DNA of 64,000 nucleotides. Source: Hemiscyllium ocellatum. Lineage: Eukaryota. Made by a program: the position numbers and the translations under genes. The notes below the pieces were generated by a model, which was not told where the DNA came from, made no database searches, and saw nothing but the letters and a program-made list of their open reading frames with translations. Within the stretch, counting starts at the first letter, position 1, and every line of letters begins with the position of its first letter. The stretch is taken from assembly GCF_020745735.1 (NCBI RefSeq), contig NC_083435.1, forward strand, positions 37,101,090-37,165,089, in the 5' to 3' direction. Shown piece by piece: positions 26,401 through 29,400 of the stretch.

Positions 26401-29400
26401 AGTAGACCAAACACCTTCTTCACTATCCTGTCAATCTGTAACTCCACCTTCAGGAACTATGACTCTACACCCCAAGGTCTGTTTGTTTGGTAACACTCCC
26501 CAGCACCATATCATTAACTGTAGAAGTGCGACTATGATTTATCCAAAATTTACCTAAATTAATCTCCATCTGCTACTCCTCAGCCCATCTGATCAAGGTC
26601 CCATTGTAAAGATGATGAAGGGCTTATGCCCAAAACGTTGAATTTCCTGTTCCTTGGATGCTGCCTGACCTGCTGCGCTTTAACCAGCAACACATTTTCA
26701 GCAAGGTCCCATTGTACTCTGAGATAATCTTCTTCACTGCACGCTACATTTCCTATTTTGGTGTCATTTGCAAACGAACCATTACTAACCATTCCTCCTA
26801 TTTGCACATCCAAATCATTTATAAAACTGACAGAAAGCAGTGGACACAGGGTCATGAGTAGCTTAAAGAGATTGATCCTCATCTCCATTCAGCCAGGCTC
26901 AGGGGAAGAGATTTCACAGCCCCACGCAGGGAGAGGGTCCTTGTAAATAACACACAGAGTCCGATCGTGGGTCAGTGCCTGTGGGAGGCTGACGGAGTGG
27001 TCACAGTCAGACATGGACTACATCCCCCAGAATGCAGCCTGTGATCGAAAGAAACGATCAGAAGGACTGGGCCTGTCATTCCAGGACAGTGGGAATGTGA
27101 GCGCTGGAATTCTGACCTGGATCGGAGAGCACATTGCTGATTTGCTCCAGGTTGAGGAGTGAGACAGCAGCTGGAGAAAGGGGCAGTGCTGCCTGAGTCT
27201 GGGACCCTCTGACAGCACAGGCCTTGGGGATTAGCCCCATGTGTAACCGCCTCTCCCTGGGCCTGATATAGGATCCCCATTCCCCTTAAATGAGATTGTT
27301 CCTCTGGTTATTAATTATTAATTATCGATGACTGATCGCTGGCAGGATTTCACATTTTTCAACGGATAGCTACTGTTGAGATCAGTGATGATGGCAGCAT
27401 TAAGACATCGATGAGATTTGGCTTTGATGGAGAAGACTTTATCAGTTTAGACCCAAACAGAATGAAATGGATCGCATCCAATTCCATCGCAGTGATGACT
27501 AAAGAGAAATGGGATTCTGATGATTCCTGGAACAACTACTGGAAAAGACACCTGGAAGAAGAAGATGTTGAACATTTAAAGAGATATTTGGAAGCTGGAA
27601 AGGAATATTTCACAAGGAAAAGTATGTATTTCTGTTTTGCTCCATGTTCTGATCTAACCTCACTGATCTATGAAACCGTTCTCCCATTCCATTCAGTGTC
27701 TGTCTATTGTTTGTATTTTCACCCTTTCCCATCACAGTTCAGCCTGAAGTGTTCATCTCCAGGAGGGAGCCCAATGGTCAGGACAAGCCGCTCACTCTCT
27801 CCTGCCTGGTCACTGGGTTTTATCCTGTAGACATCGAGGTGACCTGGCTAAGGAATGGAAAGGTCATGTCTGGGATATATTCCTCGGGGGTTCGACCGAA
27901 CCACGATGAGACCCATCAGATCCAGAAAGAGATTGAGATCAGTGCTGGGGATGAGGATCAATACTCCTGTCAAATTGAACACAGCAGCCTGGTAGAGGCC
28001 CAGCTCTATCAGTTGGGTAAGGGACTGCAGTATGTGTGAGTGTATGTGTGTGTGTGTGTGCGTCCTGTCTGTTCCACCATTCATTGAGGTTGCTCTGATC
28101 TGTCCCTCACTCCCTTTACCCATTCCTGCTCCATGTCTTTTGCTGCTCTTCCCCAACAAAACCCTCCTGATCTCAGGCTGGAAATATTCAATTGATCCTC
28201 AGTGCTCACAGCAATTTGGTTAGAAAACTCCAGATTTCCATCAGTGAATTTCCGAGGTATTGTTTCTTGATTTCTCTCCTAAATGGTTTCACTCTCATTT
28301 GAAGATGGTTCTCCCTTGTCCTGGATTCCTACACCAGATTATTCCTGTAGTGATTATACCAAGGTCAGCCAGCTGCACCCCGTCAATAGGAGGTCCCTGA
28401 TTGGGCTGTTAACCTAATCCAATCAGGGAGTCCTGACTGACATTAAAAAAAGGGTGTGTCAGAGGTATTGAGGGTTTGGCAGCTGACTCTGAATGAGGTG
28501 CTTCTAAAGTCTAGGAATGTTCATGTGTAAATAACGAGTGGCTTGGTGAGTGAATACGAGCTTCTGTAGGGTTATTTCAGGGGCAATGAGGTAAAGCACG
28601 ATCCTGAAGAAACTTGCTCACAACAGGCACCTTTCAGTCAGGGAAGCATTTGTTTGGGCAACTTGACTCATCAATCCTGCGATCAAGGACTGGGCCCAGT
28701 TTCTGAAAATAATGCGGCATATTGTCTGGGCAACATCATTGTGGCAGCTGAAAAGGAACAAGTAATTCTCCTGACAGCCTGTGGAGCCACAGCTTATTGT
28801 GTTATTGGGACCTTAGCTTTTTCTGAGGCACGAGATACTAAAACCTTTCAAGAATTAATGAAGATAATTCAGGAATATTATAAGCAAAAGCTTCCTCTAA
28901 TTCTGAGACACAATTGTTTTTATTTGGTAATTCAAGAACCAGGGATATCCACATCAGGATTCCTGACGAGGTTAAGAAGACTGACAGAAGCATGTGAATT
29001 TGGCTTAACCTTTAATGAGATGCATAGAGAATTATATGTGGAATTACTGATGTAACTGTGATGTTATTAATGATGTCACTATGTTGCAATTAATTATGCA
29101 ACTATGCAAAAACACCTACTGGCTGAATCCCAACTGCACTTCAGGCAGCTACTACAACTGGCTTTATCATTGGAAAATGCAGCAAGTGGAGCTCATGAAT
29201 TACAGCGTATTCGAATGGAAGTGGACACCCTCGACAATCCGACTGAACTTGGGGAACACCACCTGAGTGCAGGCAATTACATAGCCTCAGTCAGGACATA
29301 TCGATCAGAGGGACTCGAGGTTGGCTCACAGCAAACCCCCAAACCAAGCCCCGGCAAATGGTTAGAATTTTCTTCAAGATCCTGGCCATCAAGCCATTGT

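Follow-up and report, generated by a model that had tools for sequence, protein, structure and literature searches.

The question raised by this locus is whether an intact class I gene can exist without the disulfide bond of its alpha-2 domain. The alpha-2 Cys pair (C101-C164) is a conserved hallmark of class I molecules (PMC8236899; PMC4364491), and the bridge lends stability to a portion of the groove domain without immunoglobulin-domain support (Wu et al., PMC8236899). A preliminary description of 64,000 nucleotides of DNA from Hemiscyllium ocellatum (the window) claimed that two class I paralogs, here called genes A and B, lack both of these residues. In this report, we conclude that the two genes are most probably tandem copies from a non-classical class I family that is multicopy and specific to sharks. 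This family is very probably the lineage known as UEA, and the disulfide was lost once, on its stem.

Absence of the alpha-2 Cysteine Pair

The alpha-2 exon of gene A (27346..27621, plus strand) is 276 nt long, is entered in phase 1, and is bounded by AG and GT. Its translation was found to be (G)FHIFQRIATVEI...HLEEEDVEHLKRYLEAGKEYFTRK, or (G)FHIFQRIATVEISDDGSIKTSMRFGFDGEDFISLDPNRMKWIASNSIAVMTKEKWDSDDSWNNYWKRHLEEEDVEHLKRYLEAGKEYFTRK in complete form, and contains no Cys. A Val codon (27375-27377) occupies the position of C101 and an Asp codon (27564-27566) occupies the position of C164. In gene B the same two columns hold Val (56080-56082) and Ser (56269-56271), respectively. The class I hallmark, which does not strictly define the class, is therefore replaced by V/D in gene A and by V/S in gene B. 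The four motifs quoted in the preliminary description (QRIATVEI, LEEEDVEHL, QWIHSVEV, and LQKTSVEHL) were all located in the two genes.

The alpha-2 domain of gene A was compared with the chains of solved structures using HMMER. Only class I and MR1 chains were matched, with a best E of 4.6e-18. In the alignment with the grass carp chain 5h5z, the segments 'ygCelnddg' and 'lentCiewl' are paired with 'atVeisddg' and 'eeeDvehl' of gene A. The direct reading and the alignment to solved chains thus agree that positions 101 and 164 are without Cys in both genes. The accompanying claims of a normal alpha-2 exon length and a retained alpha-3 disulfide also hold, since the exon is 276 nt and both genes retain the two Cys residues of alpha-3. 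Among alpha-2 domains from outside the family, C/C was found in 150 of 198, and the remainder are mostly truncated. The loss of Cys in genes A and B is far beyond chance.

That the loss is an artefact of alignment or annotation, with a shifted or alternative Cys pair acting as a substitute, is refuted by direct reading of the sequence and has a negligible probability: alpha-1 and alpha-2 of gene A together hold zero Cys, which makes an alternative bond within the groove domains impossible, the flanking motifs align with the solved structures without gaps, and no support for a substitute pair was found.

Structure and Product of Gene A

Gene A consists of seven exons spread over 18 kb of the plus strand, with canonical AG/GT splice sites at every exon and phase-1 introns. 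The leader exon (17352..17403) encodes MLLILLSISLCFSRVSP and ends in a phase-1 donor. It is followed by the alpha-1 exon (18589..18849; 261 nt), which encodes zero Cys and retains an NQT glycosylation site. Downstream of the alpha-2 exon are the alpha-3 exon of the C1-set immunoglobulin type (27738..28016; 279 nt), with its Cys pair intact, the connecting-peptide/transmembrane exon (34099..34218), a first cytoplasmic exon (34664..34696), and a final cytoplasmic exon (35394..35425) that terminates in a TGA stop. Introns 2 and 4 are 8.5 and 6 kb in length, respectively. The spliced product of 350 amino acids comprises a signal peptide, alpha-1, alpha-2, alpha-3, a transmembrane segment, and a tail. 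It is identical to the H. ocellatum RefSeq protein P0224 and matches the Pfam families MHC_I (88 bits; cutoff 28.3) and C1-set (60.6 bits). Gene A is an intact class I heavy-chain gene that has already been annotated in RefSeq.

Intron 4 contains a degenerate remnant of an LTR retrotransposon (28383..33587, plus strand) with fragmented open reading frames and a single RT_RNaseH match. This remnant recurs on the 3' side of the alpha-3 exon of gene B (56809-61593), where it is 92-95% identical.

Gene B and Its Divergence from Gene A

Four exons of gene B were identified on the plus strand. The leader exon (51673..51724) encodes the same amino acids as that of gene A, and the alpha-1 exon (55016..55276) encodes a domain with 45% amino acid identity to its counterpart. 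The alpha-2 exon (56051..56326) is damaged. The codon at 56245-56247 is an in-frame TGA in place of the TGG (Trp) that is present in gene A and in every relative. The 3' end of the exon is changed as well, with final codons that read DYVVQF rather than DYFTRK and are followed by a poor donor, GTTCCA. The alpha-3 exon (56426..56704) is 95.7% identical to that of gene A at the nucleotide level. No transmembrane or cytoplasmic exon was found up to position 64000, using a hydropathy scan and tblastn with the C-termini of three relatives.

The same sub-type is intact elsewhere and likewise carries Val/Ser. A paralog in the same genome, P0210, is 96% identical to gene B, and orthologs were found in Chiloscyllium punctatum (P0223) and C. 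plagiosum (P0006). All three of these proteins read WNYYWESYLQKTSVEHL...DYFTRK. In this assembly, gene B is a young and recently disabled pseudogene of an otherwise intact sub-type, although the damage may be a sequencing error in a single assembly. The preliminary description had taken the two paralogs together as testimony to a tolerated loss. That argument stands for gene A, which is intact, but not for gene B, with its TGA and weak donor. Since gene B is a pseudogene, the evidence for the case comes from gene A and from family members outside the window rather than from both paralogs.

The two genes differ in an uneven manner. The leaders are 94% identical in nucleotides and 100% identical in amino acids. 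The alpha-1 exons are 62% identical in nucleotides (dS 1.13; dN/dS 0.38). For alpha-2, the nucleotide and amino acid identities were determined to be 74 and 57%, respectively (dS 0.53; dN/dS 0.53), in line with the approximately 40% divergence estimated at the outset. The alpha-3 exons show 12 differences, of which 11 change the amino acid, and the differences cluster in the CD-loop equivalent of gene A, which reads KVMSGIYSSG versus EVMSETQSSG in the family consensus. The low identity across alpha-1 and alpha-2, next to the high identity of alpha-3 and the retroelement, shows that the alpha-1/alpha-2 cassettes of the two genes are old and divergent, whereas their alpha-3 exons and flanks have been homogenised recently.

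Census and Phylogeny of the Family

To gather relatives, the alpha-2 exon was used as the query of an exhaustive HMMER search, and two word-indexed searches were run in addition. Approximately 100 close relatives were recovered and, within the content of the databases, all are from sharks. The 13 species are from Heterodontus, Scyliorhinus canicula, S. torazame, Mustelus, Carcharodon, Cetorhinus, Stegostoma, Chiloscyllium plagiosum, C. punctatum, Hemiscyllium, Rhincodon, Heptranchias, and Pristiophorus, and they cover both superorders (Galeomorphii and Squalomorphii). The next-best matches are from rays, at 36% identity and outside the clade, followed by bony fishes. No family member from the nurse shark was found, though the nurse-shark class I proteins AAL59854 and QGX07421 are in the collection that was searched. 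There are 2 copies in the window, at least 12 distinct proteins in H. ocellatum (after clustering at 90%), and 5-12 copies in each of the other shark genomes. Truncated or fused gene models are common among the relatives in the databases, and many other relatives are intact annotated genes.

Cys was scored at both positions in an alignment of 71 full-length family members and 35 other class I sequences. The comparators include UAA from Triakis and the nurse shark (6LUP), O19480 and O19481 from Heterodontus, the nurse-shark protein AAL59854, UBA-like and UDA-like sequences from the same sharks, and other class I genes of H. ocellatum, together with sequences from rays, a chimaera, gar, sturgeon, coelacanth, tuatara, and one teleost. 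Cys is present at both positions in 35 of the 35 comparators. In the family, position 101 is Val in 67 members, Ile in 2, Ala in 1, and Leu in 1; Cys was found in 0 of 71. Position 164 is Leu (24), Phe (19), Ser (7), Tyr (6), Cys (5), Gly (4), or Asp (2), and His, Trp, and Thr also occur.

Two trees were constructed, a quick tree of 106 rows and a careful tree of 46 rows, limited to the ectodomain. In both trees the family is one clade (support 100/100), with a stem length of 0.7-0.9 substitutions per site, and it lies apart from the UAA/UBA-like group. The phylogeny and the scoring of both positions had been proposed as checks, and together they gave a single clade in which no member has C101. 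By parsimony, position 101 requires 4 changes from a root state of Val. These results show that the C101-C164 bond was lost once, on the stem of the family and before the split of the shark superorders, and that Cys101 was changed to Val in the family ancestor, after which the position has remained hydrophobic.

Position 164 has a different history. It requires at least 23 changes and ranks 20th of 341 columns in variability. The other columns among the 35 most variable include 158, 159, 163, 166, 167, and 170 of the alpha-2 helix and 58, 66, 69, 70, and 74 of the alpha-1 helix. Residue 164, once released from pairing, thus came to vary in the manner of the helix residues around it. With a codon-step cost, Cys and Phe tie as the ancestral state at 28 steps each, and the reconstruction is ambiguous in the sub-clade of gene A. 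Because of this tie, an initial loss of C101 followed by a later purge of the orphan C164 is only a possibility.

The alternative that these genes are unexpressed pseudogenes in a birth-and-death array, in which the missing bond has no functional meaning, draws on the broken state of gene B, including the absence of a transmembrane exon within reach, on the retrotransposon remnant that follows alpha-3 in both genes, and on the numerous truncated or fused models among the relatives. It is very improbable given the rest of the evidence. Gene A is intact over all of its exons and splice sites, and the sub-type of gene B is intact in one paralog and two other species. Val101 has been kept in nearly every member for about as long as modern sharks have existed. 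In an alignment of 40 family members, 55 columns do not vary, and conservation reaches 90% or more at many others; W147, N86, and the core of alpha-3 are among the conserved positions, and neutral decay would erase such conservation. The dN/dS ratios of alpha-1 and alpha-2 between genes A and B likewise speak against decay. The claim that the loss is an old, tolerated trait of a lineage is thus borne out: it is fixed in 71 of 71 members from 13 species, and many of these members are intact genes.

Assignment to a Shark Lineage

UEA is a large multigene family that is present in both shark superorders and absent from rays and chimaeras. The class Ib cluster of UEA, UDA, and UFA is placed between brd2/b2m and rxrb. 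UEA was described by Almeida et al. in 2021 (J Immunol 207:824), reportedly as a lineage that 'lacks conservation of the nine invariant residues' and that comprises three sublineages. It is multicopy and shares one class Ib cluster with the single-copy UDA, and UBA is multicopy and located elsewhere in a cluster of its own (PMC10751288). UBA is derived from UAA, and UEA is more ancient (PMC12562908). Of the other shark lineages, UAA is classical, UCA is from dogfish, and UFA and UGA are CD1-like with single or low copy number; UFA is found in the UEA/UDA cluster (PMC10751288, PMC12562908). The gene labels in the supplement of the survey read 'MHC-Ib' only, without a lineage (PMC10751288).

Three identities were considered and rejected for the Cys-less family. 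The first is classical UAA; the family is a separate 100/100 clade in which several of the residues that bind the peptide termini have been replaced. UAA (Triakis scyllium AAB97342; nurse shark 6LUP) has the same exon plan, a predicted fold that superimposes with a TM of ~0.9, the N86 glycan site, the alpha-3 disulfide, and T143, K146, and W147. It differs in having C101-C164, Y7, Y159, and W167, in an identity of only ~30%, and in its position in the tree. The second is UBA, which derives from UAA; the UAA-proximal clade is C/C and separate from the family. This multicopy clade, with O19480 from Heterodontus (Hefr) and its relatives, fits UBA on the basis of the tree. The third is UDA. A separate clade, which contains the nurse-shark protein QGX07421 and its orthologs, has retained C101 and C164 and is 35% identical to the family, and this clade of one gene per species fits UDA.

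The family is then the only remaining group that is multicopy, restricted to sharks, and deeply branching, and it therefore fits UEA. It is a large multigene family found in both superorders, and its best match among rays lies outside the clade. UEA is also multicopy and shark-only, lies far from UAA, and has changes in the residues that hold the peptide termini. The lineage was mapped by Verissimo et al. in 2023 (PMC10751288). The leader provides a further likeness. The family leader (MLLILLSISLCFSRVSP) and that of the UDA-like QGX07421 (MLLILFSISLCFSWVSP) differ by one residue, and UEA maps to the class Ib cluster that contains UDA. The shared leader is consistent with a UDA-like gene and a family that are neighbours and have exchanged or share a leader exon. 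The UDA-like genes (QGX07421.1 and one ortholog per species) also group weakly with the family in the careful tree, but they are apparently single-copy and have both alpha-2 Cys residues and all of the peptide-terminus residues. No protein named UEA was found in the collections searched, and the trees hold no named UEA sequence. The name was assigned with good confidence by elimination and by matching properties, and none of the comparisons made speaks against membership in UEA.

The remaining alternative is that the genes represent an undescribed class I lineage of sharks, distinct from UAA, UBA, UCA, UDA, UEA, UFA, and UGA, for which the Cys-less alpha-2 would be a new character. Besides the lack of a named UEA sequence in the trees, it is favoured by the nurse shark, from which other class I proteins were retrieved and a family member was not, and by T143, K146, W147, and Y171, which are mostly kept in the family. 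The C-terminal anchors T143, K146, and W147 are better conserved than the UEA abstract reportedly suggests. UEA is, however, the sole described lineage that is multicopy, shark-only, and deeply divergent, and a family of at least 10 copies per genome would hardly have been overlooked. Published surveys cover genomes that are also represented here (white shark, catshark, bamboo shark, and whale shark) and assign all of the class Ib genes to UBA, UDA, UEA, or UFA (PMC10751288). The other clades in the trees are also accounted for, with the UAA-derived multicopy clade fitting UBA and the single-copy clade with the invariant residues fitting UDA. A lineage new to the literature is thus unlikely, and the earlier suggestion of a possibly distinct lineage or sub-lineage is not sustained: the two genes nest within a large, shark-only, multicopy clade that matches the published UEA.

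The teleost lineages S and P are likewise divergent class Ib molecules with altered grooves, but they keep the alpha-2 Cys pair, and some have an extra Cys in alpha-1 (Grimholt et al. 2015, PMC4364491). Even for a class Ib lineage of fish, it is thus unusual to have lost the pair. A literature search for other class I lineages reported to be without the alpha-2 bond returned nothing relevant.

Remodelling of the Groove

In class I structures, residues Y7, Y59, Y159, Y171, and W167 form and close the A pocket. The 101-164 bond sits directly under the A-pocket portion of the alpha-2 helix. The groove comparison was made at such landmark residues, and with an alpha-1 numbering that is uncertain relative to HLA, position 7 of the family was found to be mostly Val and never Tyr, position 59 is Phe or Tyr, and R84 is variable. 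In alpha-2, position 159 is His, Gln, or Tyr, and position 167 is never Trp. Of the 71 members, T143 is kept in 51, K146 in 64, W147 in 71, Y171 in 50, and the N86 glycan site in 71. Gene A has G7, F59, R84, T143, K146, W147, H159, H167, and Y171, and it does not carry the complete set that is invariant in classical UAA (Y7, Y59, R/Y84, T143, K146, W147, Y159, and Y171).

Structural modelling had also been proposed, and it returned a confident and canonical class I fold. The AF2 model of gene A, built from 81 aligned sequences, has a pLDDT of 85.9 overall and ~95 over alpha-1 and alpha-2, with the canonical order of strands and helices. Using Foldseek, the model was matched to chicken BF2, shark UAA (6LUP), and MR1 with TMt values of 0.86-0.92 at identities of 34% or less, which shows that no solved structure comes from the lineage of the family. 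The model supports a normal class I fold for the groove of gene A and is mute on dynamics or flexibility.

Since the loss of the disulfide and the replacement of Y7, W167, and usually Y159 fall at one end of the groove, we infer a wholesale remodelling of the N-terminal end, of which the disulfide loss is one part, with the C-terminal anchor retained. The groove may be more flexible or differently shaped, as was suggested initially. The protein would still fold as a class I molecule that associates with beta2m. In most members, V7, V101, and L/F164 could pack against one another as a hydrophobic replacement for the A-pocket hydrogen-bond network and the disulfide staple. Gene A suits this packing less well than most of the family does, because its Asp164, His159, and Gly7 are polar or small. 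The ligand would be held by the C-terminal (F-pocket) end. The N-terminal end would have a new shape that differs from one paralog to another, and residue 164 would help to set specificity there. The molecule would also fold without the need to oxidise an alpha-2 bond in the endoplasmic reticulum (ER).

Taken to its full extent, this scheme would amount to a distinct mode of ligand binding, in which anchoring is at the F pocket, the other end is open or specific to each paralog, and assembly does not require ER oxidoreductases. We regard this mode as a tentative proposal that is more likely to be wrong than right. If true, it could admit N-terminally extended peptides or a non-peptide moiety, and we know of no structural description of an F-pocket-anchored, open-ended mode for any class I lineage.

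Conclusions

The missing bond is a real trait and not the mark of a new entity, since the lineage is very probably the published UEA and gene A is in RefSeq. Any alignment of the Cys-less family with UAA displays the missing bond. We have now been able to add a census of the loss, which was seen in every family member and in none of the sequences compared from outside, along with the observations that residue 164 has joined the variable helix positions and that the loss is located together with a dismantled A pocket. The status of gene B has been corrected to that of a pseudogene. A mechanistic reading with anchoring at the C-terminal end, a remodelled N-terminal end in which residue 164 is a variable groove residue, and folding without an alpha-2 redox step would be reasonable.

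To our knowledge, both MHC classes inherited the alpha-2 disulfide from a common ancestor, and nearly every class I or class I-like molecule still has it. A family that appears to have dropped this bond some 300-350 million years ago, and then to have given rise to dozens of copies, would be a natural experiment that shows how far the architecture of the groove depends on the alpha-2 bond.

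Results and Discussion

The intact class I gene (gene A) and its tandem pseudogene paralog (gene B) were found to reside in a segmental duplication, with paired segments at 11306-17596/46717-51928 and 27329-33587/56034-61593. The flanks, leader, alpha-3 exon, and downstream retroelement of the two genes are 85-95% identical, and the alpha-1/alpha-2 cassettes only 62-74%. Such a pattern of similar flanks around divergent cassettes is suggestive of an exchange of cassettes or of partial gene conversion.

The alpha-3 exons of gene A (27738-28016) and gene B (56426-56704) differ at 12 of 279 nucleotides, and 11 of these differences are nonsynonymous (dN/dS ~3). 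The main deviation of the gene A alpha-3 domain from the family consensus is a loop that reads KVMSGIYSSG rather than EVMSETQSSG. In mammalian class I molecules its counterpart is the CD loop, which binds CD8.

A tandem repeat with a 61-bp unit (35462-36390; 15.2 copies, 93% match) begins 37 bp 3' of the gene A stop codon. Intron 2 of gene B contains another, with a 39-bp unit (55316-55854; 13.8 copies, 96% match), and the equivalent repeat is translated as coding sequence in P0006, a RefSeq model for the Chiloscyllium plagiosum ortholog of the gene B subtype. Two inverted repeats of 863 bp each (4002-4864 and 5188-6050) are 99.3% identical and are separated by a spacer of ~320 bp.

Four RefSeq proteins from several sharks (P0393, P0395, P0399, and P0401) are truncated family members composed of alpha-3 and the TM segment, and are labeled "beta-2-microglobulin-like". 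Judged by sequence, this name is misleading, because the alpha-3 and TM portion is 66-75% identical to that of gene A.

The leader of the Cys-less family, which lacks the C101-C164 disulfide (gene A exon 17352-17403), is nearly identical to that of P0398, a UDA-like protein from the nurse shark (QGX07421.1). The UDA-like gene appears to be single-copy, and outside of the leader its protein is only ~35% identical to the family. From these comparisons, the leader exon looks to be common to, or exchanged between, lineages of one cluster.
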